A stretch of 64,000 bases of DNA from Macrostomum lignano (Eukaryota), in the NCBI GenBank assembly GCA_002269645.1, contig NIVC01000486.1, forward strand, positions 1 through 64,000. The letters are read 5' to 3'. This document shows positions 8,645 to 64,000 of the stretch, one piece after another. A program made the translations under genes and the position numbers. Under the pieces are notes generated by a model, which ran no database searches, was not told where the DNA came from, and saw nothing but the letters and a program-made list of their open reading frames with translations. How positions within the stretch are numbered: the first letter of the stretch is position 1; every line of letters starts with the position of its first letter.

Positions 8645-8671
8645 CGGCCAATCTCTGCACTCATATCAGCC

Positions 8672-8953
8672 ATGGCCAATTTCGGTGCATTCAATTATTG
8701 GCCAACATTCTGGGGCTATCTGCTCATCTTCCTGTGTCTGTGGGGCCTGGCAACTCTGCTCAGACTCATTCTGATGCTGCTCTACAGCTGCCTCAGCAGC
8801 CTATGGAATCTAATTCGGTCACAGAGGAAGCCAGCTAGCCAAGAAATGAGCAGTACTCCTGCTACTACTAATAGTAACTCAATTAGTCAGGTAGAAGAGC
8901 TGCCGACTGACTCGCATTCAGAAGAATCTGATATTAAAGATGACAGTTATTAG
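8672..8953 (+). CDS. Small single-pass membrane protein, 93 aa, unknown family
   Basis: ATG at 8672 in the context cagccATGg. Hydrophobic stretch FWGYLLIFLCLWGLATLLRLILMLLYSCL, then an acidic Ser/Thr-rich tail. No family recognised. Confidence 0.5.
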   Translation: MANFGAFNYWPTFWGYLLIFLCLWGLATLLRLILMLLYSCLSSLWNLIRSQRKPASQEMSSTPATTNSNSISQVEELPTDSHSEESDIKDDSY

Positions 8954-18800: not shown

Positions 18801-21800
18801 TTATTTTCCTGTATCTGTGTATTTACCTCAAAAGATGGAGATAGATAGAAAATCTAGTGCATGACTGCGGGCCAGAGGAAGGGAGAGTTGAGATGGAATA
18901 GAAAAGGGAGAAGAGAGGTAGGAGAAAACAGAGGTGAGGGAATAAAGGAAAAGAAAGGATGAATCTCCTCAGTTTTAAAAAGGAAGAGAGGAAAGAGAAA
19001 GACGAGGGGAGGAGAGGAGAGAAAACTTTGAACGGGCCGGATTGCTATTGTGAAGTTTCAAAGGACCCGAGGGCTGGGGTTTGCCGACCCCTGCTTTATA
19101 GGCTTGAATAAGTAGCATTAGAAGCATAACATTTTCTCTATTAAGTATTTTTGTGAGCGTTAGACTACTCAACAGTAGCAAGAGAAGGATATGCTGGTTA
19201 AATTACAAAGCTTCAAACGTCTCTCACTCTGATGTTCGAGTCCCATTTTGAGCACACAAATTAATCAGCTCACGCTAGGCTACTTACAGTAGTAATATTA
19301 ATGGCTCATTAGCATAGAGAAAACGCCAATTTGAAACATCTCCAGGGCGTGCTGACAATCATTCAACCGGAGAAAGATGCCCAGATTGAGCAGCGCAAAG
19401 CTCTGGCTCACAAGTACGGCCAGACAGCTTCTCGCGATCACCAGAAACTGCTGCAGCGCAAGGAGCTGATCGAGGAGCGCAAGGAATACCTGGAACAGCT
19501 GCAGCAGCGCCGCGAAGAGGAGGAACACATGAAGCAGCGCCAGCAGCAGGAGCGAATCCAGCAGCTGGAGAGCGAGCGGATGGAGCAGGACGTCAAGCGT
19601 AGGCAGCTTGAGCGAAAGGAGATTGAGCAGCGCAATATTCAGCTGAAGGTAAGTGGCAGCTGTGTGATTCAATGATTGGCAGCTGTGTGATTCAATGATT
19701 GGCAGCTGTGTGATTCAATGATTGGCAGCTGTGTGATTCAATGATTGACAGCTGTGTGATTCAATGATTGGCAGCTGTGTGATTCAATGAGTGACAGCTG
19801 TGTGATTCAATGATTGACAGCTGTGTGATTCAATGATTGAGACAGCTGTGTGATTCAATGAGAGACAGCTGTGTGATTCAATGATTGACAGCTGTGTGAT
19901 TCAATGATTGACAGCTGTGTGATTCAATGATTGACAGCTGTGTGATTCAATGATTGGCAGCTGTGTGATTCAATGATTGACAGCTGTGTGATTCAATGAT
20001 TGGCAGCTGTGTGATTCAATCAATGATTGGCAGCTGTGTGATTCAATGATTGGCAGCTGTGTGATTCAATGATTGGCAGCTGTGTGATTCAATGATTGAC
20101 AGCTGTGTGATTCAATGAGAGACAGCTGTGTGATTCAATGATTGACAGCTGTGTGATTCAATGAGAGACAGCTGTGTGATTTAATTAGCAGTGCTTCTCA
20201 AATAAGTGACCCAAAGTGACGATAAGGTAGTTATTAGTGTCGCTGGTGAGAGACAGTAATTCAATTAGCAGTTAATAGCAGAATTCACAACACAGAGCGC
20301 TGTTCACGCCATCGCCCATGCCAAATTCCCCGCAGGTAAAGAAGGAGCGCATCGAAGTGTTGAAGGGCACGGAGGCCGGCCGGCGCGCCTTCGCCAACCT
20401 GGACGACGCCAACATCGAAGACATCAACGCCGACGAGGTTTTCGCTCGGCACGTTGAAAAAGAGCGCCGAGAGCTGATGGAGCGCATCAAGACCCAGGAG
20501 AAGAAGCTGGATCATCTGGCCCGGGCTAAGCGCCTGGAAGAGATCCCACTGCTCACTGCCGAGTATGAGAAGCGGGCTGAGGAGGCACGTCAGCGCCACG
20601 AAAAGGCGGAGGCCGAGCGGCTGCGCACGCTGAAAGAGCAGCACGCCAGGCTGTTGCAGCTGAAGCAGGAGGCCCAGAAGATCATGCCATTCAAGGCCGA
20701 GTTCGAAGACGAGATTCTGTCCGAGCGTCGGTCCGAGTTCGATCGCCGCATGGACGAATGGCGCCAGCGTTTAGAGACGGCGCGCAAGGAGCGCCTCGCC
20801 GAGCGCAAGCTGCAGCGCGAGCGGGATAGGCGCGAAGAGTTTGTGCGCCAGCGCCTGGCCGAGCTGGCCGCCCAGCGGGAGGCGAAGGAGCGCGCGGCCC
20901 GCGAGGAAAAGGAGCGCCAGATGCAGGAGGAGAACAGGAAGAAGCAGCAGCACTATGAGCAGCAGAAGGCTAAGCTAGATGAGCAGGCCAAGGCTCAGGC
21001 GCAGAAGGAGGCCGAGATTGAGGAAAGGCTCAAAGCTCAGCGCGAAGGCGGCGGCACCAGTGCCGCTTCCGGTCCCGGTGAAAAATGGCGCCCAGCCGGC
21101 GGCTCCAAGTGGCGCGAGCGCGAGAAGGAAAAAGAGGACAGCTTCAAGCGGCAAAGCGACAATGCCGGCAGCTGGCGCGCTGGCGGAGGGGAGCGAACTC
21201 GCGACGATAAGCCACTCCGACGGGAGGAGCGGCCGGATCGCTCTGACCGTACTGACCGGTTAGATCGTGATCGCCGAGATGACCGCCGCGATGACCGACG
21301 TCGTGATGACCGCCGCGAGGACCGCCGGGAAGACCGCCGGGAAGACCGTCAGGAAGACCGTCGGGAGGACCGTCGCGATGACCGCCGGGAAGACCGTCGG
21401 GAGGACCGCCGTGATGACCGCCGTGATGACCGACGTCGCGATGACCGCCGTGATGACCGCCGCGATGACCGCCGTGATGACCGTCGGGAAGACCGTCAGG
21501 AGGACCGTCGCGATGACCGTCGGGAGGACCGTCGCGAAGACCGTCGCGATGACCGTCGTGATGACCGTCGCGATGACCGCCGTGATGACCGACGCCGCGA
21601 GGACCGTCCGTCAATCCAACGCCGAGACGAAGGCCGACGCGACTTGACGGAGGGCTCTTGGCGCAGCGGCGGCGCCAGCTCAGCTTTCGGATCATCGCGC
21701 AAGTCGATTCCGCCTCGTCGGGGCGACGACTCCGCCCGTGGCGCCGCCGACGCTAGCGGCACGCCGTCCAGGCGCCAAGACGAGCGCGGCGAGTCCGGCG

Positions 21801-21907
21801 GGGCCTGGCGCTCTCAGGCTGCGCCTAGGGCTCAGCAGGCCGCGCCGGCAGCCGCTGCCAGCTCTGGCGAAGCGGACGGCTGGACAACCGTCAGCAAGAA
21901 GAAGTGA
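15821..21907 (+). CDS. EIF3A: Eukaryotic translation initiation factor 3 subunit A, 4 exons, ~1164 aa
   Basis: MPQYFNKPENALKRAQEFLEV...LVPWLKFMWESYRQCLDLLRNN is diagnostic. Exons are 15821-16795, 17599-18243, 19346-19648 and 20336-21907, all phase 0 with GT-AG boundaries. A coiled-coil region, an RDDR repeat region and a C-terminal DGWTTVSKKK follow. Confidence 0.97.
17030..17540. repeat. 20-bp minisatellite (atgagacgtgtaagatctca) in eIF3a intron 1
   Basis: Tandem units seen directly. Confidence 0.93.
18359..19093. mobile_element. Non-autonomous hAT-like element with a nested MITE-A
   Basis: Ends agggggtcggcaaac ... gtttgccgacccctg, with a perfect 8-bp TSD CTTTATAG (18351-18358 and 19094-19101). 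MITE-A at 18385-18819 is inserted just inside the left end, flanked by tatttagc/tatttacc. Confidence 0.85.
19654..20180. repeat. 23-bp minisatellite (cagctgtgtgattcaatgattgg) in eIF3a intron 3
   Basis: Starts immediately after the gtaagt donor at 19649. Confidence 0.95.
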
Positions 21908-38287: not shown

Positions 38288-40732
38288 GGGTGCACGACAA
38301 TTAACTGCCACAATTTGACTGCCACAATTTGACTGCGGTCAATTTGACTGCGGACAATTTGACTGCCGAGCAATTTGACTGCCAACAAAATGACTGCGGA
38401 CAAAATGACTGCCAACAATTTGACTGCCGACAAAATGACTGCCAACAAAATGACTGCGGACAAAATGACTGCCGACAATTTGACTGCCGACAAAATGACT
38501 GCCAACAAAATGACTGCCGACAAAATGACTGCGGCAATTTGACTGCCGACAATATGACTGCGGCAATTTGACTGCCAGCAAAATGACTGCGGACAAAATG
38601 ACTGCCGGGCAATTTGACTGCCAGCAAAATGACTGCCGGAAAAATGATGCTCCTAAAGTTAAACACTCTGTCACCCCTTTTAAGTCCATGCATGTAGTGA
38701 AATATTGCATTTAGAATGATGCAGAACAGAATACATAACCTTTATAATACAACAAGCTGTTGAAACCCGCGGATTTTGAACCCGGGGAATTCCAATCCCA
38801 GGAACTATTTTGCATATATTCTAAAATCTGAGGTTAAACTCGCACAAAAACTTTTATTAGTTAGGATAGAGTTAGACATAACAAAGAGTGTATTCGTGTA
38901 AAACTCGGTGATCTTGAAAATTCTTAAATTTATGCATACAGTACGAGCGTATTATTGAAATCACCCATTTAAATAATAGGTGTAAGGTGTATAGTGTAAC
39001 GTTATATATTATGGTAATTTATAAGGGGTATCCCTTAGCTGCACCATGGCGTTACTAAATCCAAGCGTTACTAAATTCAAGCGTTACTAAATTCACGGTT
39101 GCTAAATTTCGGTTACTATAAATTCAAGGGCACCCACGTCCCACAAACTTGGCTTTTGAAGCCGGGATTGGCAGACTATAACCTCAAAGGCCAGATACGA
39201 GTAAAGAATCCTGCTTATGGCTGTGGGCCAGATGAGAGTGGAAAGGAGAATGAAAAGACTATTAGAAGAGAGGAGAGGCGAGAGGGGGTAAGAAAAAAAG
39301 ATAAAAGATAAGATGGGTGAGGAGAGAGCAGAGACAAGTGAGAGGAGGGGAGAGAAGAGGGAGAGGAAAGAGTAGAGGTGAGAAGAGGGAGAGACAAGAG
39401 GGGAGAAATGAGACAGGATCGATGAGAGAGGATCAAGGAAAGAGATTAGAAAGAGATTAGAAAGGATAGAGAAGAGAGGAGATAAGAGGGGGGAGAAAGA
39501 TGAGTGAAAAAGAGGAGATAGAGATAAGAGAGAGAGTTGAGAAAGAAGACAGGAGAAAGGAGAGATGATAGAGTAAAGGGAAGAGAAGAGCGGAAAGAGA
39601 TGAGATTGTAGAGATGAGAGATGGAAGGAGAGATGAGAGAGTAGAGATGAGAGAGATGAAAGAAGAAATGAGAGAGTAGAGATGAGAGATGAAGGAGAGA
39701 GCAGAGTGCAGAGAGACGATAGAAGAGAGTATAGGGAGAGAGTATAGAAGAGGGAAAAGAAGAGAATTAAGGAAAAAGAGGAGTCATAAGAGGGGTAAGA
39801 AAATTTTTTTTACAGAGGATTACAGAGGAGAGAGGTGAGAGAACATACGAGTATAAGAGAGTAAAGATGACAGATAAGAGAGGGGAGATGAGAGAGCAGA
39901 GACGATGAGAGAGAGGAGACGAGAGACGAAAGAGAAGTGAGAAAACAGAAGAGAAAAAAAACAGAAGAGAAAATAGAAGTTTCAAATGATGCAAGGGGCA
40001 TAGGGAGAGGCAGAGGTAGAGGCCAGAGTTTTCCTGACATTCTGTGTGGCACCCCAGCCAACAATATCAGTTTTCCTCAAATCCGAATTTTACACGAATG
40101 CACTGTATTTTGTGTTTAACTCTATCCTAACTAATAAAAGTTTTTGTGCGAGTTTAACCTCAGATTTTAGAATATATGCAAAATAGTTCCTGGGATTGGA
40201 ATTCCCCGGGTTCAAAATCCGCGGGTTTCAACAGCTTGTTGTATTATAAAGGTTATGTATTCTGTTCTGCATCATTCTAAATGCAATATTTCACTACATG
40301 CATGGACTTAAAAGGGGTGACAGAGTGTTTAACTTTAGGAGCATCATTTTTCCGGCAGTCATTTTGCTGGCAGTCAAATTGCCCGGCAGTCATTTTGTCC
40401 GCAGTCATTTTGCTGGCAGTCAAATTGCCGCAGTCATATTGTCGGCAGTCAAATTGCCGCAGTCATTTTGTCGGCAGTCATTTTGTTGGCAGTCATTTTG
40501 TCGGCAGTCAAATTGTCGGCAGTCATTTTGTCCGCAGTCATTTTGTCGGCAGTCATTTTGTCGGCAGTCAAATTGTTGGCAGTCATTTTGTCCGCAGTCA
40601 TTTTGTTGGCAGTCAAATTGCTCGGCAGTCAAATTGTCCGCAGTCAAATTGACCGCAGTCAAATTGACCGCAGTCAAATTGACCGCAGTCAAATGTGGCA
40701 GTCAAATTGTGGCAGTCAATTGTCGTAGACCC
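38288..40732. mobile_element. Foldback/MULE-like non-autonomous DNA transposon with ~590-bp modular TIRs
   Basis: Arms ~38288-38875 and ~40117-40732 are reverse complements. The outer ~350 bp are built of ~14-15-bp subrepeats (caaaatgactgccg/caatttgactgc). Termini are GGGTGCACGACAATT and GGGTCTACGACAATT, with a perfect 9-bp TSD TATTACAAG (38279-38287 and 40733-40741). The interior is non-coding and GA-rich. Confidence 0.92.
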
Positions 40733-41021
40733 TATTACAAGGCCGTAGTTTTCTAGAACTAATACATAACAAATATTATACGGTAGTGAATTCATTAAAA
40801 TAAGAATATACCGATTAATCCAACGTTCGTACTGTATACGCATAGGCAACTGAAGTAGGATAAGGGGATGGTCATGGGGTGTCACCATAGGCACACATGT
40901 CACCACTAAGAGCGTCCTTCTACTTCAGTTGCCCATGACTGTATAGGTACATATACCATACTTATTAAAACAAAAGTTCGTAAGCAAATAAATTATTCAA
41001 TAAAAGGTTGCAGTGAATCTG

Positions 41022-44000
41022 CTACGGGTTCATTCGCGCCATCAGTCTGGCGCGCAAGCTTGGCAGGAAGTAAGCAAGGCCAACAGCCAGTGCTCCACTC
41101 CAGCGGCGCCGCCAATAATGGGGGCACTGACCGGGGCAGTGTGAATGACGGCTCCAACAATGATTACCCCAATCATTGGAATCAAAGTGCGACACAAGAT
41201 GTCACGTCTTCTGCCGAGGAACTCCTGCTGAGGCATATTGAATTTCGCTTTACGATGCAGCAAAAGCAGATGTGATGCAAGTCCCACAACGCCAATTAAA
41301 AGCACCGAGCCGCACTCTGCAATTAGGGAACCGGCAACGGTGGTGATCGAAGCTTCCCTCTGCATCAAGGTGTAGACTAATCGTAGGATTCGAACTGCAG
41401 CAGTAGCAATGGTTTGCACCGCGTTGGGCAAAAAGTGGCTAAAACGCCAGGCTAGATTATTCAACTGAGTACTGCTCACCCGGCCATAAATTAAATAGTT
41501 GACAAAGTGTTCGCAGTTGTTAAACAGTAAACTGTAACTCCTACTGCCACACAGTTGATTGAATTTGGCGTCGATCTGGTTCCAGTCTAAATCGGAGTTG
41601 TGCACGACCTTCTGGATTTGATTGTCTGCAACTCGAAGAAATCCTTGAAGCTTGACGACTCCCATGGCTCCAGGACCTTGCGGCAATGCGTACGTGACCC
41701 CAACGCCGGAACAAGTGGCAGCATCCCACTCTGTTAAAATGAAATCAACCTCAGAAACTACTCCGTTGACCATCCGATTTAGAATAATGTGATTGTATTG
41801 CCTGAGACTGCGTCTATCAACTCTGTCTTAGAGTTCAACTTTTCTATTCATTTCCAAAACTTCCAGTGATTTTTCTTTGGTCAGTTTCTTCATTTTGACC
41901 TGAATTTCGGCGAGTTCAGTACCGAACAGGCTTTGAATGCCGCACATCCGACCGGCATCAGGATTATTTCTCAGCCAGAAGCAAAAGTCCCGACTGCAAA
42001 CCTTGCTGCCAAACTTCTTGGCCTTCGCAGTCCATCCCTTCCTGTCGTCGTCGGCATTCAAAAATGTGCAGTCCGTCAGCTCCTCCAGAATAGCAAAACC
42101 AGCGGCTTCTTCAACGCCATTATAGTTGACGCGTCGAATCGAGCTCTCACCCGGGCCAATGACGAGCTTTTCAAATCGCACCCGTTTCTGGTCGTGATTA
42201 TTTTCGTACAACTCGACACGAACAATATCGCTGCAGCCATCTACTGCAGAGCAGCTGCGCATAATTGCTTCGTGCTTGTAAAAGCAAGGTGACTTGTAGA
42301 ACTTTATGTGGCCTCTCTCGAACTCAACAAGGTCTTGCACTGAGTGTACGAGAACTGCGCACTGCTCCCTGTTGCTACTATGCTTGATGCTGCACCAGCG
42401 AGCAAAGTCGCGACTGCTGTTCCACTGGAAGTTGTGCTGCTTCTCTTTGAGTCGGTCGTTGGCTCTTTTAGTCACCTCTTCTGGGGTGAGAACGCAGCCT
42501 TCCAGTACGTTGTACTTAATCGTGTAAATTTTCTGCTTCTTTAAGTCTACTGATAAAGTTTGCCTCTCAATCTGACCTCTCCACGAATCTCTGTAAAAAA
42601 TGAGATCGATTGTAGCGCAGTGGGGATTGTTCGTATCCGGTCGCACCGGGTTGCCGACCACCACTGCGTGCTGGTACAGAGAATACCAATTGTCTCTCCA
42701 AGAAATGACCGAACCAGCTGAAATGCTTTGCATATCATATACTTCTTCAGCTATATGTGCTGGTGACTGGCTACCACCGCCATACAACTGGCAGTTCAAG
42801 CTGGTATCATTGTGTACGCACAGCTTGGCGTCCTTCTCTTCAGCATCAATGATGTACTTTAGTTGTGACACGCACAAATTTTGTTTTTGAGAGCCGTAAT
42901 GGAGCGTTTTAATGCTGAATTGTCCGGATGACCGACCGCTGCCGGTACTGATGCCCGCAACAACCCGATAGACACCATTTATGTGTAAGATGTCGCCAAC
43001 TCTTAGGTCATCACAAGCCACGGGCAACTCACGGTCATGATTGGGAGTAACACTCTCAAACAATACGAGCCGATTGCTTTGCACTTCATTTTGAGTCAGT
43101 GCATCCCAAATGCTGTCTTTCCAATCATCAAATCTTCTATCGCTGTTCGTCACCAGGCGACAAATTTTGAATGAACTTTCACTGTGGTTCAAGGCCAGAT
43201 TTTCTATGAACTCAATGCGTCGGGTTAATTCCGCTTCACTGATGACACGAGACTGATATTGAATGACTCGAGTCACTGGCTTGTCCATTTTGAGCACTAG
43301 TTCACTTGTGTGAACGTAATGCAATTCATTGGGCTTGATTACTTGCAATTCGAGCAAAAGTTTTCGCCCATTATTCAGTTTAGTTACTTTGGTCACTTCT
43401 CCGTGAAGTCTGTTTTTTAGACAGCAGTTAAATTCAAGATGATCACCTTCTTTAATTTCGTGAGTATGAAAGCCATCTAGAAATATGGGCACCGAATTGT
43501 CAGCTCTGTGGCTGATGGACTTGGTCTTACACCACACGACAAACAGAGTGCCACAGTTAGCAATCAGAGAGTATTCCTGCTCGTTGAGGCGGCTTCGAGC
43601 TCTTTCAACCACAACATCGGGCTCGTGGCACCAGAGATCCGAGAAGTGACAGAGAAAGCAGTTCGGATGCACTTGTTTAGTTCCCTGTCTGTCATATTTG
43701 AAAACAAAGTCCTCTCTGATCACAGTTTTAGCGTCAAGCCACGATTTCAATCCGTAATGAATAGCAGTGACAATGTATTTTTCATTTTCACGCGCCAGTT
43801 TTTCCACGATAACCCTGTGCCACTTGCCAGTGTACCACAGGCGCATGACGTCACCTTTCTTTAGCTGTTGAAGCAACTGGAGGGTTACCGGTTCCTCTGA
43901 GTAGATGCCTGCGAGATTTACCGGAGATGATTCTTCTAAGTCTAAAGGACAATCAGCTGTGTTGTCATTGTGCACGCACAGTGTTGTTTCCGTCTCTTTC

Positions 44001-44824
44001 TTTCTTATCAGATACTTTAGCGTGCAAGTCTTGCGATTTTCGTGGTCGACTTCACTGTAGTTGACTAATCCAACACTGACTTCATCCGCGTCGCGAACTA
44101 CACGGCAGACTACTCTGTAGGCATCGTCAACAAAAATGATGTCGCCTCTATGAAGATTTTTCACTTTCACCCTCTGGGTCAATGGTCGAATCGGTCTACT
44201 CTGATTCGTCATCTGTGCGGCTTGCTGCCTCCAGTCCTGCCCGTGGCGACTCGCGTCGGTGAGAAGTAGGCAAAACTGCAGAGTCAAAATGCGCCTCGGA
44301 TACGCGAGGCCGCGCATCAAGTCGATCCTGTGGAGAAATTCCTCAGTCTCCACGCACTTCGATACCGATTTCACTACTGGAACGCGCTCTTTCGATTCTT
44401 TCGATTGTCGAAATTTCCGCTCAGAAATGTTCACAAAGGAAATTCGATCCTTCATCAAGTCCTGCGTGGAAACACTCAACGATAGTAAATAAATGTCCTC
44501 GCACATCTCTTGGCTACTTCGTACGACTGCATGAATTGATCCAGAGTCGTGTTTAAGACTCAAATGATCTCCAGCTTTCACTTGGTGGGTTTCAAAATTC
44601 CCAGGCAAATAAATTGGCACGGTACAATGTTTTCTGTGAGATTGGTCCTTGGTCTTGCACCAAAGTACGAAACCTGAATCACCAAACCATTTGATTTTCT
44701 CGTTCAAGCAACTTTGGGCTCTCCTGACGACTTCGTCGAGAGGACTGCAGTACGATTTTGGAAAGTGTCGAAGTTGGCAACTGGGTTTCAGATGTTTTGA
44801 TCTTCTAGAATTTATAATATTCAC
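41022..44824 (-). CDS. Multi-repeat LRAT/NlpC-P60-like (permuted papain fold) protein with C-terminal transmembrane segments; interrupted by one in-frame TAA at 41828-41830
   Basis: Repeated LRAT-like motifs: GDH/GDV/GDI strands, VVERARSRLNEQEYSLIANCGTLFVVWCKT, EEVTKRANDRLKEKQHNFQWNSSRDFARWC, and a final SYSLLFNNCEHFVNY. ORF 41042-41773 is in the same frame as 41828-44824. Adding 1 nt at 41095 gives a hydrophobic end GVGALAVGLAYFLPSL..MNP* (stop 41022-41024). The 5' end is unresolved. Confidence 0.75.
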
Positions 44825-50335: not shown

Positions 50336-51898
50336 AATTGTCTAAACACACGAACTGCCACTCCCAGACCGCATGTTTGGGAACAATATATCTGAAGGCA
50401 TAGCGGCACAAGTTATCAATTCAAAACGTAAACAAAACCACGGAGCTGATGCAGGAAAAATTGAAGCAAAGTATGTTCAAAGCAAAGAGTACCGAGCTAA
50501 CAGTTATTTCGGGTAAAAATCTTTAGCAACTTCTAAATGCCTCAACGATGTCCACGTTTTCTAAAGTCAGCACAGGTGTACGGTTTAGGATCTCCGGATG
50601 AAGAGACCTGCCCAGTGCCCATGCCCCGGAGATCCCACAAAGGTTACGGTAGTCTTCGTAGTCTCCGTAGGAGATCTTAAACCCTTTAAAGTCTCCGGTC
50701 GGAGATCCCAGTTCGTTTGCAGTCTCCGGATCGGCGACCCAAAACTGGCCGGAGCCCCAGAGATCCTAAACCGTAATACCGGCTGGTTCGGGTCGACGTC
50801 CGGCTCCAAGAACAGTGCAAAGGCTATTTAAAATCTGAAGACGGTCGCTCCGGAATAATTACCGCAAAATTTCATCACAAACAACAAAGAACCAAGACCC
50901 ATAAAGATGTGATTCAAGAGTTAAGGGCCAAATGTACTTTGATAAACTGCTGCATCTCGGCTGAATTCTTCAACCGTCAGATTCACTGCTTAGCAGCATT
51001 TTGCCAAGCAATACTACTACTGATCAAGAGGCAACTTCAGCATTGGTAGTGGTGGCAGTGCAGGTCTCAGGAGCTTTTGGAAGCAGCCACAGAAACTTCT
51101 GGGCAATTAGCATCACATTAACTTAACGAAAGCAGGCAAAATGTTTTGAGCTGCTATATTTCTTAATTTGAAGTCTATTCGAAACCAGGTTAAACTATAA
51201 ATTTATTCCTTTAGCAGCCTTCTTTTGAGTGATTCTTTTCGGGAACCTTTGATAGTCCGGGGTGCTGTACATTTTCATACAACGCCGGTGACAGCGGTGT
51301 AGGGTACACGAGTGATCCGATACTAAACTATACTTATGCGGTAGTAGTCAGTGTATAAGCACCAACGAGTGTCGCAACACCTCTGGTAGCAACGCGAATT
51401 CTGAGCTTCATCACGCCAGAACGAGCTCACTGTGCACACAGTGAAAATACTGAAAAATATTAGTAAAATACGTCTCAGCTCATTGTAGGAAAAAGTACCA
51501 ATGCTACAATTCGTAGCTCGTATTAGCGAAAGCGTAAAACAATGAAAACCGTTGACACAAGAGGCAATAAATAGCAGTAGCATTTTATAATAAAATCAGA
51601 ATAGGTGAAAATATTGTTATTTTGTTTCTGAATGTCTGAATGTTAGCCTGATCATGCTCTAACAGATGGCAAGGTAAAGTAATTATTCATAATTATGATC
51701 TCACTTAGTGGAAAAACTAGAAGGTAACATTATACACTCGTACTGCTTTGTAACACAACTACAATTATAATGAAATCATCCTTAATCCGCGCTGTCGATC
51801 ACTTGAAACCCGCTACGCTCCGACTCTGCAACCTCCACCGAGTCGCTGAGCTCTCTCGGAATTAAGCTGGCTCCCGGGTAGCTCTGGATGAGAGGCAA

Positions 51899-54800
51899 TT
51901 AATCTCTGAACAGTTGAAGCAAGCTGGCGGCAAAGTCGGCGCTCAGATCCATCGACGAACTCTCGTCTTCGAAACCAGTGACGTCATCCCATTCGACCAC
52001 CCTGAAACGGTTGCCTCCCTCCTCGGCGAACTTGGTCAGAGCGTCGCGGAACTCGGCCAGATGAGCTCGCACATCGCCAGTCCTGATGCCGCCGACTCTG
52101 CATTCTGCCTGCTTCCGGATGCCGAGTACACAGGTGGGAATTTCGAACGCGATTCTCCTCGATCGCCAGTCGTGCACTCGGAACGAGTAGCGCCTGCCGC
52201 TGGCCGCTCGGAACTCGTGCACACTCGACTGAGCTCCGAGCTCCGCGAGCTGGCTCCGCAACTTGGACTCGTCCGGGTAGCGACCGCTCTTCGGGATCAC
52301 GAACGTGTACGGCAGGTCGAACGGGATTGGCTCTGCAGAGCTGGACAGCTGCTGCATGTCTGAAATGAGCACAGATGCTCAGTTAGACCAGCAGCTATCA
52401 CCTAGCTAATAGCAGACGTCATATCCGTCTTAAATAAGTCGCTACTTACAATCACTGAGGGGCTGCGCGAATCCGATCCACGTGTTTGCCGCCATCGCGA
52501 ACGCCATCGACATCAGGGGAAGCTCGTCTCTGACCGACTCTGCGCTTGACTGCTGAGCAGCTCTCGATACGAAACTCCACCCGTCTATTAATAGGAAATC
52601 CTCAACTGCAGCAAGCATTTGCCACCTCAAAGAGTCACCGTCCTCCGCGATGTCGATCACCTGAAGCACGCTTGGCTCCGACTCTGCTACCTCCTCCGAG
52701 CTGGTGTCGCTAAGCTCTCTCAGAATCGAGTTCGCTCTCGGGTGGCTCTGGATGAAGCGCAACTCGTCTCTAAACTGCTGGAACATTGCCGTCTTGTCCT
52801 GATCGGCCATCCTGAGCTTCTGCATGACGAACATGGGTGCAGCGTAGCCGCAGAAGACCACTGCGTGCGAGTAGGTCGACTGGTCCTTCGTGAGCGGCTT
52901 CTCCAGCTGCAGCAGGTACGCCGTTACTCGCTTCTTGTAGCCGGGACTGTCGAACTCGAGACACAACTCAGTCGATGCGGTGCTCACCTTGCTGCATCCA
53001 GGAAACAGCATCTGTGGACACACACAGGATACCGGCTGGTTCTGGCTGCTCACGGCGCGCTCGTCCAGCAGCAGGAAGTACTTGGGAACGACTAGGATAT
53101 TGCTGGGGTTGACATCGGTGAGTCCGAAGTTTGTGAGCACTTGTTCTCGGATGAGGCCTTGAGCATCGAGCAGTGACGAGAAAATCTGGCGTCGCATGTT
53201 GGGCAGCACGTAGCTGAGGAACCCGGCGGCCAGTTGCCATGCGAAGCTCTCGCCTGGGCTGCTAAAGCCGCTGTTTTCTGAAAGGATTTGCAAATGGTGC
53301 GGAGAGAAGCTAATGCTATATCTTTTAAGTTTCATCTATGAAGTGATGCAGTAAGCTTTTCTGGCTATGCAGATCAGCGGCGAAGTAATTGTCCATTTGA
53401 GTTGGAATTATAGTGGTGATAAATTCTTCTTTTAATGACCACCTGGGTTCCAAAAGGTACGCAGAATGAATGCACAATCTCGTAAGAAACAAAGTCAATA
53501 TTGTTTCAAAATTACATACTTACCTAGTTCTGTATTGTTTAAGTCTTCCAAGAGTTTTTCAACTCTTTTATTATTTAAATCGTGCAGTTTCAGCACCTTC
53601 ACCATTCGAGTTGGAAGCAGCTGCGACAGGTACAGGTGACTGTCTGTTTTGCTTCTGTAGTTCTTGATTAGGTGGGCCATGCGCTTTCGTAGCCCATGAC
53701 ACTGTAATGTTTGCATGGTATTGACAGCAATAAGTATCCAGCCTTGACCTTGGGCTTACTACATTTGCCCTGTGCTCCAATTGCAAGTGGAGGCAAATGA
53801 TTACTACAGAGTTCAACTGCAACTGAGTTTGCAAATTTGCATTAAACCGTTTGAATTTTTGATTGTAGCCTAAAAGTCTACATTCTTCCTACATAAATCT
53901 GTGTAGGAAGAAATTGCAAAATAATAACTTTTTTACTTAATATGCATGTAACAATTTTGCCATACCAATTTATCAACAATTTTCTTAATCGCAAACTCAA
54001 TCTTTCTTAATTTCCTAGCCCAAATAACTACATTTACTTGTAACTTTGCATCAATTAATCCTTTTTAAATTTTTGGTAACTATAGCGAAGTAACGAGAGG
54101 ATTCAGAAAAAGGTAACAATCGTTACCTTTTTGGTTATTTGTAACGCCCAACACTGCATGCCATCAATAAGTTCCACTCTACCTTGAAAAGCTCCATACC
54201 AAGACGCTTTACACCACCAAGACGCTTTACACCACCAAGACGCTCTACACCACCAAGACGCTTTACACCACCAAGACGCTCTACACCACCAAGACGCTTT
54301 ACACCACCAAGACGCTCTACACCACCAAGACGCTTTACACTACCAAGACGCTTTACACCACCAAGACGCTTTACACCACCAAGACGCTCTACACCACCAA
54401 GACGCTCTACACCACCAAGACGCTTTACACCACCAAGACGCTTTACACCACCAAGACGCTCTACACCACCAAGACGCTCTACACCACCAAGACGCTCTAC
54501 ACCACCAAGACGCTTTACACCACCAAGACGCTTTACACCACCAAGACGCTCTACACCACCAAGACGCTCTACACCACCAAGACGCTTTACACTACCAAGA
54601 CGCTCTACACCACCAAGACGCTCTACACCACCAAGACGCTCTACACCACCAAGACGCTTTACACCACCAAGACGCTCTACACCACCAAGACGCTCTACAC
54701 CACCAAGACGCTTTACACCACCAAGACGCTTTACACTACCAAGACGCTTTACACCACCAAGACGCTTTACACTACCAAGACGCTTTACACCACCAAGACG

Positions 54801-56087
54801 CTTTACACTACCAAGACGCTTTACACTACCAAGACGCTTTACACCACCAAGACGCTCTACACCACCAAGACGCTCTACACCACCAAGACGCTCTACACCA
54901 CCAAGACGCTCTACACCACCAAGACGCTCTACACCACCAAGACGCTCTACACCACCAAGACGCTTACACTACCAATAAGATTCGCAATACCAATAAGATA
55001 ATGATGGTTCGCTCTTATCAATAATGTCCCCTTAATTGTTTTAAATAGTTGCTTCGAGCAGAAAAAAGCTAATAAGTCCTCGCGGGAGTGTCTCTAAATC
55101 TTGGTGAGATTCAGAAAATGATCAGCAACACCGAATAAGAACTTGTAAATCCTTACCCTCTCCACTGTTTGTCTAAGAAGTTTGGTCAGATGTGTCGCAG
55201 ATTCCGGTTGAAACGCAGTAAAAGTATTCAATACTAGTAGAACTTGATGACTTTCATCAATGCTGCTGTACACAGAATTCCCAGAGTTGCAAGGCTGCTC
55301 TACCAGATTTAAACAGCCTCTCAGGAGATCAACGACATTGTCATAGAGTCGGTCCTCCCCGTCACTGGAACCAACCACGATGATTGTGACGAATCTGTTT
55401 GTGTCTGAAAAGATTTAGTCGCACTCTTACTACATCAGAATTCGGTTGTATTGAGTTTTAACCGAAATTTAGCACCATCTATACATGTTTTTAACAAAGA
55501 TGCGATAGAGCCACGTACCTTGATTGAAGAATTGATGGCTGCACATGTATAGTCGATCAGCATGGGATTTATGGAAGTCCATTCTACACTTTGAAACAGA
55601 TTTCGACAGCTTAGGAAGCGAAAGTTCTCAGTAAGTTTTAAGCTAGCTAGAAAACAGATCTGCTGTTTCGTTACTGGGTCCGACAACATTGCCTAATGAG
55701 AAAAAATAGAACGAGAAAAACCGAGGCAAAACCGTGGACTTGCTGTGGGAGTTCCTTCATAAAAAAGGACATTTGTGCAAGTGTAGGCGCATAAAGTGTA
55801 CACAATTAAACAGTCTCATTTTCGCAAGCGGATACACGTAGCTCGTACAACTGCAGATAGATATGTTGATAGAGCTTCATAACGGGTTAATTTCTACCTC
55901 CATAATCCTGTTGACTACATGCACGATGACCAAAAAAATCTAGCCCTAATTTATTGTCACTATTGATAAACAGCATAACTCTTCTATTTTGGCTCACGGT
56001 AGCTCTTGTCTTTCTGGCACACAACCGCAAAGCTGAGGCTATTTCTTTATTTCTCTCGGCAGATGCGACCAGGAGGGCCGCAGACAT
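51899..56087 (-). CDS. Putative TIR-STING-STING protein (copy 1), 6 exons, ~659 aa
   Basis: Model: 56087-55998, 55692-55519, 55404-55157 (needs +1 A at ~55400 or an alternative donor), 53701-53524, 53277-52450 and 52359-51899. TIR-like segments: FVTIIVVGSS..SSIDESHQVLLVL..HLTKLL..LSQLLPTRMVKVL. STING-like domain 1: GESFAWQLAAGFLSYVLPNMRRQI, PKYFLLL, GYKKRV, CGYAAPM, QQFRDELRFI. STING-like domain 2: MAFAMAANTWIGF, PYTFVIP, GRRYS, FEIPTC, AEFRDAL, RFRVVEW. Aligned by eye to human STING (HGLAWSYYIGYL, RLYILLP, GIKDRVYS, LEYATP, KLFCRTL, CRLIAY). Confidence 0.72.
54195..54975. repeat. 18-bp minisatellite (acaccaccaagacgct[c/t]t) in the intron between TIR exons; duplicated at 63640-64000
   Basis: Tandem units; the same unit occurs at both sites, 9444 bp apart. 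Confidence 0.97.
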
Positions 56088-58733: not shown

Positions 58734-60191
58734 TTAATTTGACAAATTACTTCGTCCATTTAATAACAGTTCAAACAAACAGGCGGTAAAGTCGGCGCTC
58801 GGATCCATCGACGAACTCTCGTCTTCGAAACCCGTGACGTCATCCCACTCGACCACCTTGAAACGGTTGCCTCCCTCCTCGGCGAACTTGACCAGAGCGT
58901 CGCGGAACTCGGCCAGATGAGCTCGTACATCGCCAGTCCTGATGCCACCGAATCTGCACTCTGCCTGCTTCCGGATGCCAAGTACGCAGGTGGGAATTTC
59001 GAACGCGATTCTCCTCGATCGCCAGTCGTGCACTCGGAACGAGTAGCGCCTGCCGCTTGCCGCTCGGAACTCGTGCACACTCGACTGAGCTCCGAGCTCC
59101 GCGAGCCGGCTTAGAAACTTGGACTCATCCGGGTAGCAACCGCTCTTCGGGATCACGAACGTGTACGGCGGGTCGAAAGGGATTGGCTCTGCAGAGCTGG
59201 ACAGCTGCTGCATGTCTGAAATGAGTAGAGATGCTCAGTTAGACCAGCAACTATGACCTTGCTAATAGCATTGACGTGACATCAGTTTTGAAATAAGTCA
59301 CTACTTACAATCACTGAGGGGCTGCGCGAATCCGATCCACGTGTTTGCCGCCATCGCGAACGCCATCGACATCAGGGGAAGCTCGTCTCTGACCGACTCT
59401 GCGCTTGACTGCTGAGCAGCTCTCGATACGAAACTCCACCCGTCCATCAACAGAAAGTCCTCAACTGCAGCAAGCATCTGTGACCGTAAAGAGTCACCGT
59501 CCTCCTCGATGTCGATCACATGAAGCGCGCTCGGCTCCGACTCTGTTACCTCCTCCGAGCTGGTGTCACTAAGCTCTCTCAGAATCGAGTTCGCTCTCGG
59601 ATGGCTCTGGATGAAGCGCAACTCGTCTCTAAACTGCTGGAACATTGCCGTCTTGTCCTGATGGGCCATCCTGAGCTTTTGCATGACGAACATGGGTGCA
59701 GCATAGCCGCAGAAGACCACTGCGTGTGAGTAGGTCGACTGGTCCTTCGTGAGCGGTCTCTCCAGCTGCAGCAGGTACGCCGTTACTCGTTTCTTGTAGC
59801 CGGGACTGTCGAACTCGAGACACAGCTCAGTCGATGCGGTGCTCACCTTGCTGCATCCAGGAAACAGCATCTGCGGACACACACAGGATACCGGCTGGTG
59901 CTGGCTGCTCACGGCGCACCTGTCCAGCAGCAAGAAGTACTTGGGAACGACTAGGGTCTTGCTGGGGTTGACATCGGTGAGTCCGAAGTTTGCGAGCACT
60001 TGTTCTCGGATGAGGTCTTGAGCATCGAGCAGTGACGAGCAGATCTGGCGTCGCATGTTAGGCAGCACGTAGCTGAGGAACCCGGCGGCCAGTTGCCATG
60101 CGAAGCTCTCGCCTGGGCAACTGTTTCGTTGTTGAACCAGATTGTCGTTGATCTTTTTGATTGATGTACATGTATCATTACCGGTTTTCAT
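58734..60191 (-). CDS. STING-STING paralogue (copy 2), apparently lacking the TIR exons
   Basis: Exons are 60191 (in-frame ATG; an acceptor near 60113-60121 is also possible) to 59309, and 59215-58734. It is highly similar to copy 1 from PGESFAWQ onward. The sequence at 60120-61330 shows no match to the TIR exon. Confidence 0.7.
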
Positions 60192-61333
60192 CTTCGATCT
60201 TTTGACAAATCTTTAATGTGTTTGAATCAAAATGCATTTAAATAGAACACTCTTCAAACTCTACGGTTTCTTATTTTGAGCAGAGACTTTGTGTCCTCTA
60301 TTATTTGAGTGGATCTTCGTTGCTTTAACGTTGGCTGCGACATGAATAAAACGCTGCGTTTGCCGTGGAAATTCCATGAGAAAAAGCTTGTATACGTACG
60401 AGTTTGGCTGGTAAAAACCACGGTATTTCCGGGGGAAGTCCTCGGACAAACCCCGGAATCTATGCAAAAAATTAGTTCCTAATAAGACGGTCACTTTGGA
60501 ACGTAGTAAAAGTAAAACTTACTGTTGTTTAGTCTTGAAGTGAATTCGCCATTCCTAACCTCTTTAGGACCCATCTTCTTTAGCTGTTAATTATAGTAGA
60601 ATTAAAATTTAGTGCAGACGGATTTGCCAGTTACGTTTTAAAAAGGCAAAATATTGTGTTCGCATATTTGTTGGCAATCAGTTCTTAAATGCTTTGATTT
60701 AATGACGCAATGATAATGACTATAATTACACGTGCAATTAATATATGTAATCATAGTTAAGCAAGTAGATGCTTGAATTGATGGACTAAAACGCATAAAA
60801 AAGCAAATTTGAACCAGCTTTGCCTCATACTCCAGTCATGCAAGACATTTTGCATATTTTAGTGTGCACCCCTGAGTTTAATTGGCTGTACATAAAGTGG
60901 GATATAGTGGATATACAATTATTTTATTCTGAGGGCCTGAATATATGTGAAATCAATCTTGGGCTCTATTGAATAGGCTAGCAAACAAGGAGATGGAAAA
61001 TGAAAATACAATACGCATTAACAGATTTCGAAATAATAACACGACAACAGAGGAGTCCATCAGTAAAAGTTGACAGTAGTTCATAGTCTTATTGTATCAT
61101 TGCTGCCATTACAATCCTTTTTTGAGTATCTCAAAGAATCCGACAGATCCAAGGACTCTTGACTGCCAGAGCAAATAACATCATGTCGACCCCGATCAAG
61201 ACGATCGTAGATTCCAGATCGCAGAAAACGACATGCTGTAGGTCCGTTAATGCTCGTGATTTTGCAGTCTCTAATAAATGCCCAGGATATCAGCCAGAGA
61301 AGATAGATTCTATTGCGTGAATCATCATTTCTC

Positions 61334-63145
61334 CTAATCTGTTGCTGTCAACAAGCCAAGAAGAGATCTTGCTGACTCGATTTTGTTCGGTTCGGTCACA
61401 AAGCATTCATCGAAACCCGTGACGTCATCCCATTCGACCACCTTGAAACAGTTGCCTCCCTCCTCGGCGAACTTGACCAGAGCGTCGCGGAACTCGGCCA
61501 GATGAGCTCGTACATCGCCAGTCCTGATGCCACCGAATCTGCACTCTGCCTGCTTCCGGATGCCAAGTACGCAGGTGGGAATTTCGAACGCGATTCTCCT
61601 CGATCGCCAGTCGTGCACTCGGAACGAGTAGCGCCTGCCGCTTGCCGCTCGGAACTCGTGCACACTCGACTGAGCTCCGAGCTCCGCGAGCCGGCTTAGA
61701 AACTTGGACTCATCCGGGTAGCAACCGCTCTTCGGGATCACGAACGTGTACGGCGGGTCGAAAGGGATTGGCTCTGCAGAGCTGGACAGCTGCTGCATGT
61801 CTGAAATGAGTAGAGATGCTCAGTTAGACCAGCAACTATGACCTTGCTAATAGCATTGACGTGACATCAGTTTTGAAATAAGTCACTACTTACAATCACT
61901 GAGGGGCTGCGCGAATCCGATCCACGTGTTTGCCGCCATCGCGAACGCCATCGACATCAAAGGAAGCTCGTCTCTGACCGACTCTGCGCTTGACTGCTGA
62001 GCAGCTCTCGATACGAAACTCCACCCGTCAATCAACAGAAAGTCCTCAACAGCAGCAAGCATCTGTGACCGTAAAGAGTCACCGTCCTCCGCGATGTCGA
62101 TCACATGAAGCGCGCTCGGCTCCGACTCTGTTACCTCCTCCGAGCTGGTGTCGCTGAGCTCTCTCAGAATCGAGTTCGCTCTCGGGTGGCTCTGGATGAA
62201 GCGCAACTCGTCTCTAAACTGCTGGAACATTGCCGTCTTGTCCTGATCGGCCATCCTGAGCTTCTGCATGACGAACATGGGTGCAGCGTAGCCGCAGAAG
62301 ACCACTGCGTGCGAGTAGGTCGACTGGTCCTTCGTGAGCGGCTTCTCCAGCTGCAGCAGGTACGCCGTTACTCGCTTCTTGTAGCCGGGACTGTCGAACT
62401 CGAGACACAACTCAGTCGATGCGGTGCTCACCTTGCTGCATCCAGGAAACAGCATCTGTGGACACACACAGGATACCGGCTGGTTCTGGCTGCTCACGGC
62501 GCGCTCGTCCAGCAGCAGGAAGTACTTGGGAACGACTAGGATATTGCTGGGGTTGACATCGGTGAGTCCGAAGTTTGTGAGCACTTGTTCTCGGATGAGG
62601 CCTTGAGCATCGAGCAGTGACGAGAAAATCTGGCGTCGCATGTTGGGCAGCACGTAGCTGAGGAACCCGGCGGCCAGTTGCCATGCGAAGCTCTCGCCTG
62701 GGCTGCTAAAGCCGCTGTTTTCTGAAAGGATTTGCAAATGGTGCGGAGAGAAGCTAATGCTATATCTTTTAAGTTTTATCTATGAAGTGATGCAGTAAGC
62801 TTTTCTGGCTATGCAGATCAGCGGCGAAGTAATTGTCCATTTGAGTTGGAATTATAGTGGTGATAAATTCTTCTTTTAATGACCACCTGGGTTCCAAAAG
62901 GTACGCAGAATGAATGCACAATCTCGTAAGAAACAAAGTCAATATTGTTTCAAAATTACATACTTACCTAGTTCTGTATTGTTTAAGTCTTCCAAGAGTT
63001 TTTCAACTCTTTTATTATTTAAATCGTGCAGTTTCAGCACCTTCACCATTCGAGTTGGAAGCAGCTGCGACAGGTACAGGTGACTGTCTGTTTTGCTTCT
63101 GTAGTTCTTGATTAGGTGGGCCATGCGCTTTCGTAGCCCATGACA
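61334..63145 (-). CDS. STING-STING paralogue (copy 3) with the second TIR exon; 5' exons would lie beyond the window
   Basis: Exons are 63145-62968, 62721-61894 and 61800-61334. 61886-64000 matches 52442-54556 at an offset of 9444 bp. The C-terminal tail has diverged (DECFVTEPNKIESARSLLGLLTATD*). Confidence 0.72.
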
Positions 63146-64000
63146 CTGTAATGTTTGCATGGTATTGACAGCAATAAGTATCCAGCCTTGACCTTGGGCT
63201 TACTACATTTGCCCTGTGCTCCAATTGCAAGTGGAGGCAAATGATTACTACAGAGTTCAACTGCAACTGAGTTTGCAAATTTGCATTAAACCGTTTGAAT
63301 TTTTGATTGTAGCCTAAAAGTCTACATTCTTCCTACATAAATCTGTGTAGGAAGAAATTGCAAAATAATAACTTTTTTACTTAATATGCATGTAACAATT
63401 TTGCCATACCAATTTATCAACAATTTTCTTAATCGCAAACTCAATCTTTCTTAATTTCCTAGCCCAAATAACTACATTTACTTGTAACTTTGCATCAATT
63501 AATCCTTTTTAAATTTTTGGTAACTATAGCGAAGTAACGAGAGGATTCAGAAAAAGGTAACAATCGTTACCTTTTTGGTTATTTGTAACGCCCAACACTG
63601 CATGCCATCAATAAGTTCCACTCTACCTTGAAAAGCTCCATACCAAGACGCTTTACACCACCAAGACGCTCTACACCACCAAGACGCTCTACACCACCAA
63701 GACGCTTTACACCACCAAGACGCTCTACACCACCAAGACGCTTTACACCACCAAGACGCTCTACACCACCAAGACGCTTTACACCACCAAGACGCTCTAC
63801 ACCACCAAGACGCTTTACACCACCAAGACGCTCTACACCACCAAGACGCTTTACACCACCAAGACGCTCTACACCACCAAGACGCTTTACACCACCAAGA
63901 CGCTCTACACCACCAAGACGCTTTACACCACCAAGACGCTTTACACCACCAAGACGCTCTACACCACCAAGACGCTTTACACCACCAAGACGCTCTACAC

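Follow-up and report, generated by a model that had tools for sequence, protein, structure and literature searches.

Two STING-like domains in one soluble chain: a tandem gene family of the flatworm Macrostomum lignano

In its usual form, STING is a symmetric homodimer in which the two-fold axis is the site where a cyclic dinucleotide is read, and most of the flatworm species sampled are without the STING pathway. A gene cluster in the free-living flatworm Macrostomum lignano raises the question of whether a single polypeptide can carry two STING domains and, if so, how such a chain might form a receptor. We analyzed a 64-kb window (the whole stretch of DNA studied, positions 1 to 64,000 of contig NIVC01000486.1), in which the gene of interest (gene A) is one of three tandem paralogues (A, B, and C). 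All coordinates are those of the window, and all genic features lie on its minus strand.

Gene structure and protein layout

The coding span of gene A, 55582-51899, comprises five exons with GT-AG borders that encode 592 aa, and the product matches, at 100% identity, the last 592 aa of PAA82215.1, a GenBank "hypothetical protein". The span is thus shown to be an intact five-exon M. lignano gene. Exon 1 (55519-55582) begins at its first in-frame ATG, at 55582 (MDFHKSHADRLYMCSHQ...); a second ATG, at 55546, is the start in models P0003 and P0014. We set the 5' limit at 55582 because the frame that joins exon 2 in phase starts at this ATG and yields the product matching PAA82215.1. This frame differs from frame 0, which had been chosen in a preliminary description of the locus that also placed the 5' end of the gene at 56087. 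Neither the proposed first exon (55998-56087) nor frame 0 of 55692-55519 can be joined in phase to 55404-55157, and both were rejected; the former, which appears in none of the deposited models, is at most 5' UTR.

Exon 2 (55157-55404, GT-AG borders) encodes most of an N-terminal alpha/beta domain (aa 25-105 of 592), and the intron that follows contains a minisatellite of 43 copies of an 18-bp unit (54198-54975, without strand assignment; TRF). Exon 3 (53524-53701, GT-AG borders), which was located by tblastn with residues 88-151 of P0003 (95% identity), encodes a helical linker (aa 106-164). Exon 4 (52450-53277) holds, in one open frame, a first STING-like domain (D1), a 20-aa interdomain linker, and helix alpha1 of a second such domain (D2), while exon 5 (51899-52359) supplies the remainder of D2 and the stop codon. 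The splice between these last two exons, predicted earlier as 53277-52450 to 52359-51899, is confirmed both by the frame, which is open to the stop at 51899, and by four GenBank models (P0002, P0003, P0004, and P0013) that share the junction (GTAAGT...TTTCAG, codon split T|AC, product ...PLSD-Y-MQQL...). A second candidate donor, 6 nt away, would give PLN in place of PLSDY. A relic resembling the tail of D1 (SHPRANSILRELSD...VID.A; 51779-51928; tblastn, 54-58% identity) overlaps the last codons of the gene and its 3' flank.

Because D1, the linker, and alpha1 of D2 lie in the single exon 53277-52450, the presence of two domains in one chain is independent of any splice prediction. This arrangement bears directly on the possibility that annotation had merged two adjacent single-STING genes. 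Public models P0001, P0009, and P0016 are indeed clearly fused with their neighbors; however, the D1-linker-D2 alpha1 segment is an uninterrupted exon in all three copies in the window, and paralogues at other loci have the two-STING arrangement as well. The continuous open reading frame effectively refutes a merger, and we rejected this explanation, whose probability we consider negligible. Paralogue B (58737-60212; ORF start MKTGND...) has intact D1 and D2 exons, and no exon for an N-terminal domain was found for it between copies B and C. This copy could be a sensor alone, without an output domain. Paralogue C (61337-63157) retains linker, D1, and D2 exons, with its 5' exons lying past the end of the window.

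The gene A protein thus runs from the N-terminal alpha/beta domain through the helical linker, D1, and the interdomain linker to D2. As had been proposed, it is without transmembrane helices (the maximum Kyte-Doolittle mean over 19 residues is 1.29), and no 19-residue window exceeds 1.6 in P0003, P0004, P0005, P0006, or P0008. The interdomain linker (aa 396-415, GWSFVSRAAQQSSAESVRDE; 52523-52582) was delimited by the family alignment. Judged by the general geometry of STING dimers, 20 residues could feasibly reach from alpha4 of D1 to alpha1 of D2.

The N-terminal domain had been described as TIR-like, a claim for which Pfam, hhalign, and PDB searches gave no signal. Pfam TIR, TIR_2, and SEFIR produced no match at E<=10; a TIR profile (MyD88, TLR2, and SARM1) reached at best E 0.019 with 2.4% probability in hhalign; and PDB searches with the alpha/beta domains returned no TIR and nothing relevant. 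These tests, which covered seven alpha/beta domains of the flatworm family, with Pfam run on the isolated domains, were all negative. In the weak full-length AF2 model, the domain is predicted to have just a beta-alpha-beta layout (pLDDT 60-70). The UniProt label 'SEFIR domain-containing' on P0012 is a tentative lead.

Two divergent STING domains

D1 (aa 166-395; 52583-53272) is divergent and carries, ahead of the lid, an insertion that contains Cys. Compared by hhalign with a four-species STING profile, it aligned over 147 columns with a probability of 76.7% and an E value of 2.1e-5; its score of 39.75 was reached by none of 40 column shuffles, the maximum of which was 22.0. A profile search of the PDB with D1 gave 57 matches at E<=10, all of them weak (best E 0.035) and all of them STING. 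The D1 of paralogue P0006 matched Pfam STING_LBD at E 0.0014 (18.5 bits, under the curated cutoff of 27). For gene A, Pfam STING_LBD gave no match even at E<=10, Pfam, PADLOC, and NCBIfam detected neither STING nor TIR in the complete protein or in segments of it, and phmmer against the PDB returned nothing. Taken together, the profile comparisons indicate that D1 is a STING ligand-binding domain.

For D2 (aa 416-592; 51902-52522, split by a 90-bp intron at 52449-52360), the evidence is structural. A template-free AF2 model built from a seven-sequence alignment had a pLDDT of 77.9 and a pTM of 0.74, and all 50 matches listed when Foldseek compared it with the PDB were STING ligand-binding domains (E 4e-7 to 1e-5, TM 0.56-0.67, approximately 185 columns), including those of human, bovine, Nematostella, rat, pig, duck, and Crassostrea gigas STING. 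The model supports a predicted STING fold for D2, with a long kinked alpha1, a five-stranded sheet with a beta-hairpin lid, and alpha2 through alpha4; this assignment depends on that one model, since D2 gave no significant sequence signal. STING was not found in a D2 profile search of the PDB, and hhalign of D2 against the STING profile, although co-linear over 138 columns, yielded an E value of 0.26 with a score inside the shuffled null (16 of 40). A deeper alignment could not be built because homologue searches (described below) returned M. lignano proteins only. The full-length AF2 model, made from five sequences, was poor (pLDDT 41.5): only STING appeared among its 50 Foldseek matches listed, the half that aligned (D1 or D2) was not assignable, and the D1 region (pLDDT 25-45) contained no confident structure. 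Hence, of the two STING folds that AlphaFold and Foldseek had been expected to reveal, that of D2 was recovered, while D1 is without a confident model. The central proposal of the preliminary description, that one soluble flatworm polypeptide contains two STING-fold domains, nevertheless holds, for D1 through profiles and for D2 through AF2 and Foldseek; the STING motifs that it listed for both domains are all present in the translation, each on the matching STING secondary-structure element.

D1 and D2 have no detectable sequence similarity to each other (BLASTP E 14; hhalign probability 0.1%), so that an internal duplication is not demonstrable by sequence. They share the order of elements, alpha1, beta1, lid hairpin, beta4-alpha2, alpha3, beta5, and alpha4. 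At the positions of human Y167, R238, Y240, E260, and T263, the residues are F, R, Y, G, and A in D1 and F, R, Y, E, and T in D2, those of D2 (as well as a retained S241) being read from the co-linear but statistically non-significant alignment. G166, the lid Arg238, and Tyr240 appear to be kept in both domains, and Y167 appears in both to be replaced by an invariant Phe. In 592-aa numbering, the counterparts of Y167 and R238 are F183 and R280 in D1 and F439 and R501 in D2. D1 further keeps W161 and P264 and carries the changes E260G, T263A, and R232S. In the D1 and D2 exons of the three window paralogues, dN/dS ranged from 0.08 to 0.30; these exons are under purifying selection, which is as strong on D1 as on D2.

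Lacking equivalents of E260, T263, and R232, D1 may not bind ligand. Such a loss would fit an alternative in which D2 alone works as the ligand-binding domain and D1 is a degenerate STING fold that acts as a partner in structure or regulation, as one half of a pseudo-receptor, or as a binder of some ligand other than a cyclic dinucleotide. The residues that D2 appears to retain (R238, Y240, S241, E260, and T263) are consistent with this alternative, as are the three D1 substitutions and the large insertion before the D1 lid. We nonetheless consider it somewhat unlikely: D1 keeps W161, G166, F167, R238, Y240, and P264, it is constrained as strongly as D2, and the halves of a pseudo-dimer share one pocket, so that asymmetry need not mean inactivity.

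Family distribution and known relatives

Both domains are present in every family member found (gene A, copies B and C, P0002-P0006, P0008, and P0011), and alpha1 of D1 and alpha1 of D2 are among the most conserved segments across the family. In P0005 and P0006, an alpha/beta domain of about 180 aa sits at the position of the interdomain linker, and the two inserts match each other by hhalign (E 5.6e-7); P0005/P0011 and P0006/P0008 have an alternating [alpha/beta]-D1-[alpha/beta]-D2 layout. Word-indexed searches with the spliced protein, the family alignment, and P0006 found no homologues outside M. lignano, and an HMM search run exhaustively over 1.84 billion representatives likewise yielded M. 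lignano proteins only. Judged by these searches, the two-STING family appears so far to be known from M. lignano only.

The preliminary description considered the architecture undescribed, which was an overstatement. Two members of the family, A0A1I8FVP2 and A0A267E4Z6, bear a name that UniProt assigned automatically, 'Stimulator of interferon genes protein'. Among oyster database annotations are proteins that combine two STING domains with two TIR domains, for which our literature search found no functional study. Like the oyster proteins, which are known from domain annotation, the flatworm proteins have two STING domains per non-transmembrane chain, and the alternating layout of P0005/P0011 and P0006/P0008 is comparable. 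In a comparison made by annotation alone, gene A and copies B and C differ in having no second alpha/beta domain and in joining D1 to D2 by 20 aa, and the flatworm D1 and D2 differ in being mutually unrecognizable by sequence. The two-STING flatworm proteins vary a known receptor in an unusual way and are less new than had been claimed.

The more familiar relatives carry one STING domain per chain, whereas gene A encodes two. With metazoan STING (TMEM173; Pfam PF15009 STING_LBD), the flatworm protein shares the D2 fold and, in comparison with the human, Nematostella, and coral proteins, the element order in both domains and, apparently, G166, an aromatic residue at 167, and the lid Arg238; it lacks the four-helix transmembrane domain, is too divergent for Pfam, and has no recognizable C-terminal tail of the TBK1/IRF3 type. 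With the TIR-STING proteins of bacterial CBASS (e.g., SfSTING) and of Crassostrea gigas (PDB 8ydn), it shares a soluble, non-transmembrane N-terminal alpha/beta domain ahead of STING alpha1, although that domain gave no TIR signal in any test.

The extreme divergence and lineage restriction of the family could also mean that a STING fold was repurposed, such that these proteins sense no nucleotides or act on another pathway, either as a decoy or by regulating it negatively. That no canonical transmembrane STING, no TBK1-recruiting tail, and no recognizable effector domain (Pfam scans of the whole protein and of isolated domains) were found agrees with this idea. The stacking-aromatic and lid-arginine positions, however, appear to persist in both domains of paralogues whose identity within each domain is just 34-44%, and cGLR genes are present: Table S3 of Li et al. 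(PMC9980059) lists five M. lignano cGLRs, among them PAA86972.1 and PAA45980.1. We regard repurposing as improbable.

A single-chain receptor model and its implications

The reading that we favor, with a probability of roughly 0.55, is that the gene A protein is a cytosolic cyclic-dinucleotide receptor in which D1 and D2 form one asymmetric pocket within a single chain. D1 would pack on D2 through the long alpha1 helices in the manner of two STING protomers, giving one ligand pocket. A ligand made by one of the M. lignano cGLR enzymes would close the lid, and lid closure would drive oligomerization and gather the N-terminal alpha/beta domains as output. An intramolecular pseudo-dimer receptor is plausible. 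A more specific version, which we put forward tentatively, is an obligately asymmetric single-chain STING: two anciently diverged domains would build, within a monomer, one hetero-pocket adapted to a cGLR product that is itself asymmetric. If true, gene A would encode a naturally occurring heterodimeric STING whose output domain belongs to a type not yet recognized.

Both STING folds might instead pair between chains (D1:D1' and D2:D2', or D1:D2' head-to-tail), in which case each pair of chains would have two pockets, in dimers or in open-ended filaments. Canonical STING is a homodimer, and the domain of about 180 aa between D1 and D2 in P0005 and P0006 implies that close tethering is not conserved. 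In addition, bacterial and oyster TIR-STINGs are described as signaling through filaments (PMC9402430). Yet D1 and D2 have diverged beyond recognition while always occurring together, each conserved, as expected of obligate hetero-partners, and we think pairing between chains rather unlikely.

A chain with two mutually unlike STING domains would be a natural experiment in breaking the symmetry of STING. It could show how ligand specificity evolves for messengers that lack symmetry, for example cyclic dinucleotides of mixed linkage or mixed base. Because the M. lignano family escapes Pfam, surveys that use standard profiles may undercount STING in divergent lineages. M. lignano has both cGLRs and an expanded, tandemly arrayed, selectively constrained STING-like family, and a cGLR-STING axis would become testable in this regenerating and genetically tractable animal.

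Gene model and tandem array

The region carrying gene A is eukaryotic, and the gene, one of three tandem paralogues in the window, occupies its minus strand (55582-51899). Five exons (55582-55519, 55404-55157, 53701-53524, 53277-52450 and 52359-51899), separated by introns that are all GT-AG, run from the first ATG at 55582 to a stop at 51899. The 592-aa product matches PAA82215.1 (BOX15_Mlig008101g1, a "hypothetical protein, partial" in GenBank) at 100% identity over the C-terminal 592 residues of that record. The spliced product of the last two exons is 96-98% identical to Macrostomum lignano proteins, which identifies the window as DNA of this species. The preliminary description had joined 53277-52450 to 52359-51899, and this junction was confirmed: the intron reads GTAAGT...TTTCAG, a codon is split as T and AC, and the frame continues through ...PLSD-Y-MQQL... 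and stays open to 51899. All of the STING-series motifs that it listed were found in the translation. Its 5' end at 56087 was incorrect, as the ORF beginning there and frame 0 of the following exon do not splice in phase to 55404-55157, and the 56087 ORF was ruled out as the first exon of gene A on this ground; another frame of that following exon does join 55404-55157 in phase. With the exception of the 5' end, the original observation is real. Further, exon 53277-52450 alone encodes the first STING-type domain (D1), a 20-aa linker and helix alpha1 of the second (D2) in one uninterrupted ORF, so the two-domain polypeptide does not depend on the predicted splice. Public models use two donors for intron 4, 6 nt apart (52450-52457) and both preserving the frame; GenBank models read ...PLSDYMQQL and those of WormBase/UniProt ...PLNMQQL.

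The other two paralogues, copy B (about 60212-58737) and copy C (63157-61337, its 5' end beyond the window), are also on the minus strand. D1 and D2 exons are intact and of the same length in all three genes, with dN/dS values of 0.08-0.30, indicating that these are constrained genes rather than decaying copies. Copies B and C are nearly identical in the D2 exon (dS 0.011) but not in the D1 exon (dS 0.094), a mosaic that suggests gene conversion within the array, where such a pattern is typical. No exon for the N-terminal domain was found in the 1.1 kb between B and C (60100-61340), and the D1-exon ORF of copy B holds an ATG (MKTGNDTCTS...); as judged from these two features, copy B may encode a sensor-only D1-D2 protein. 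Gene A and copy C have the same 18-bp minisatellite (ACCAAGACGCT[T/C]TACACC) in their equivalent introns, with 43 copies in gene A (54198-54975) and at least 20 in copy C (63642-64000, continuing past the window end). At 51779-51928, overlapping the final codons of gene A and its 3' flank, lies a relic similar to the C-terminal portion of D1 (SHPRANSILRELSD...VID.A), apparently a remnant of unequal exchanges by which the array arose.

Elsewhere in the genome, more distant paralogues (protein models P0005, P0011, P0006 and P0008) have the layout alpha/beta domain, D1, an alpha/beta insert of ~180 aa, and D2. P0011 is 38% identical to gene A overall, and P0006 and P0008 share about 31% identity with it across D1 and D2 (tblastn); the interdomain inserts show homology among themselves (E 5.6e-7). 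No relatives outside M. lignano were found in word-indexed searches of 5.8 billion proteins or in an exhaustive HMM search of 1.84 billion representatives. The near-identical family records P0001, P0009, P0016, P0012 and P0015 carry unrelated UniProt auto-names of the "domain-containing" type, with HECT, RING-type, VWFA, Death, SEFIR and RWD as the named domains. Several public family models are fused with adjacent genes: P0009 has the S34 domain of a mitochondrial ribosomal protein (PF16053) at its start, and P0016 consists of D1-D2 followed by a partial D1 and another D2.

The window also holds a DUF4528 exon (8226-8774, plus strand, E 1.6e-46); a Ty3/gypsy-type LTR retrotransposon (11347-15096, minus strand) whose Gag-Pol ORF of 1249 aa is uninterrupted and encodes a zinc knuckle, aspartyl protease, RT, RNase H and integrase; eIF3a exons (15821-21907, plus strand) for the PCI/TPR region (E 8e-114) and for a long repetitive tail rich in Arg and Asp; and two adjacent LRAT-domain ORFs (41042-44824, minus strand) of 998 and 243 aa with LRAT/NlpC-P60-type motifs (NCEHF), the longer of which appears internally repeated in about four modules. 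Two near-identical repeat-derived ORFs in inverted orientation (38301-38710, minus; 40281-40756, plus), about 1.6 kb apart, may be transposable-element arms or a palindromic duplication.

Two divergent STING-type domains

Gene A had zero Pfam matches at E<=10, no match in the PDB by phmmer, and none in PADLOC and NCBIfam scans. When the PDB was searched with a D1 profile of five sequences, 57 sequences matched at E<=10, every one a STING chain, led by Nematostella STING (E 0.035); the alignment spans helix alpha1 (GeslaWqlaaGflayvlPnl in D1), with a weak second in-register stretch at "..YATPL..". Paralogue P0006 matched Pfam STING_LBD at the same helix below threshold (E 0.0014; 18.5 bits against a cutoff of 27). 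D1 was also aligned by hhalign with a four-sequence STING profile (A6) consisting of human STING, Nematostella STING (confirmed identical to 5cfl_A), and 8efn_A and 8gjz_A (taken from HMMER output). This alignment covered 147 columns, nearly the whole domain, with 76.7% probability and E 2.1e-5, and its score of 39.75 compares with a maximum of 22.0 for 40 column-shuffled D1 alignments. From these sequence comparisons we take D1 to be a STING ligand-binding domain, though a divergent one. Its strand beta1 and lid are separated by a large insertion, absent from canonical STING, that holds two cysteines invariant in all paralogues (C.CP..LFPGC.K, about 52980-53040 on the minus strand, aa 245-262 of the 592-aa model), which may form a metal or disulphide site.

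For D2, sequence alone was negative: a PDB search with its profile did not recover STING, hhalign comparisons with human STING and with the STING profile were non-significant (E 0.25-0.26), the score fell within the shuffled null (16/40), and D1 and D2 have no detectable similarity to each other (BLASTP E 14; hhalign probability 0.1%). The one hint at this level is that the non-significant alignment is co-linear element for element over 138 columns, compared with at most 35 in shuffled controls. The case for D2 comes from an AF2 model of the domain alone, made template-free from a 7-row alignment of family sequences only, whose lead sequence matches gene A exactly save in the last ~15 residues. 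This model (mean pLDDT 77.9, pTM 0.74) has the element order alpha1, beta, alpha, beta, beta, beta, alpha, alpha, beta, alpha. Of the 215 PDB matches that Foldseek gave at E<=1e-3, every one of the 50 listed was a ligand-binding domain of STING, the sources being bovine, human, Nematostella, rat, pig, duck and C. gigas; ~185 columns aligned, with TM-scores of 0.56-0.67, E values between 4e-7 and 1e-5 and a probability of 1.00. The full-length gene A model was poor (pLDDT 41.5); the 50 Foldseek matches listed for it were all STING, both eukaryotic and bacterial. D2 is thus predicted, from a single model on a shallow alignment, to have a STING fold, and the proposal of two STING domains is supported for D1 by sequence and for D2 by predicted structure.

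Pocket residues, N-terminal domain and proposed mechanism

The canonical STING pocket is formed by two protomers paired via alpha1, each contributing the stacking Tyr167 and the lid Arg238 to ligand contacts. Few segments in the gene A family are as well conserved as the alpha1 helices. D1 keeps the equivalents of human W161, G166, Y240 and P264, has R238 in 4/5 members and an invariant Phe at Y167, and carries S, L, G and A at R232, S241, E260 and T263, respectively; a degenerate D1 is accordingly one rival explanation, and repurposing of the STING fold is another. D2, mapped through its non-significant but co-linear alignment, keeps G166, R238 (invariant) and E260 (invariant), again has an invariant Phe at Y167, and carries A at W161, E or T at R232, Y or F at Y240, S, T or R at S241, T, A or P at T263 and C or S at P264.

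D1 and D2 are both present in every family member, D1s aligning with D1s and D2s with D2s, and this constant association, with each domain conserved despite their mutual divergence, favors an obligate D1:D2 hetero-pair over the rival arrangements, in which the domains pair between chains or form filaments. The 20-residue linker should be long enough to run from D1 alpha4 to D2 alpha1, as estimated from general STING dimer geometry. The gene A product is plausibly a single-chain pseudo-dimer, in which obligate pairing of D1 and D2 would create one asymmetric pocket; the N-terminal domain would then serve as the output when ligand drives closure or oligomerisation. As candidate makers of the ligand, we point to the five M. 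lignano cGLRs, several of them ankyrin-fused, that were cloned for a screen by Li et al. (PMC9980059, Tables S2 and S3); no cGLR gene lies within the 64-kb window.

Residues 1-105 are predicted to have a beta-alpha-beta layout (pLDDT 60-70 in the weak full-length model) followed by a helical linker. The suggestion that this domain is TIR-like was not supported: no family member or isolated domain matched TIR or SEFIR in Pfam, hhalign of seven family alpha/beta domains against the TIR profile gave at best E 0.019 at 2.4% probability, and PDB searches with these domains found nothing relevant. The UniProt label "SEFIR domain-containing protein" on one paralogue is a lead, a putative pointer to the TIR/SEFIR superfamily. 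The predicted lack of transmembrane helices held for gene A, and no family member has such a segment, save that the first strand of P0002, a truncated model, is hydrophobic.

Relation to known STING proteins

Unlike canonical TM-STING, the gene A product has no transmembrane domain, and so is not of that class; nor can it be classified as TIR-STING, since it has two STING domains and TIR was undetected. The layout of oyster proteins annotated with two STING and two TIR domains is mirrored by P0005 and P0006, and gene A is a shortened form of this layout with its two STING domains directly linked. Eukaryotic TIR-STINGs were described as rare by Culbertson and Levin (PMC10732462), whose text mentions neither flatworms nor tandem STINGs. 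The architecture had been put forward as one not known to be described, which overstates its novelty. Papers on both STING and Macrostomum were sought in full text, and the 15 listed of 21 matches included no relevant one. STING identity is not new at the database level, as A0A1I8FVP2 and A0A267E4Z6 are auto-named "Stimulator of interferon genes protein" in UniProt. The former (580 aa) has 94% identity to gene A across the 580 aa that they share in our family alignment, where it is represented by the near-identical P0003. Cestodes have 0 cGLR and 0 STING in Table S5 of Li et al. (PMC9980059), a table from which M. lignano is absent. We consider the main interest of these genes to be (i) their asymmetric tandem-STING design, (ii) the presence and expansion of the family in a flatworm, and (iii) that the family was missed by standard profile searches.
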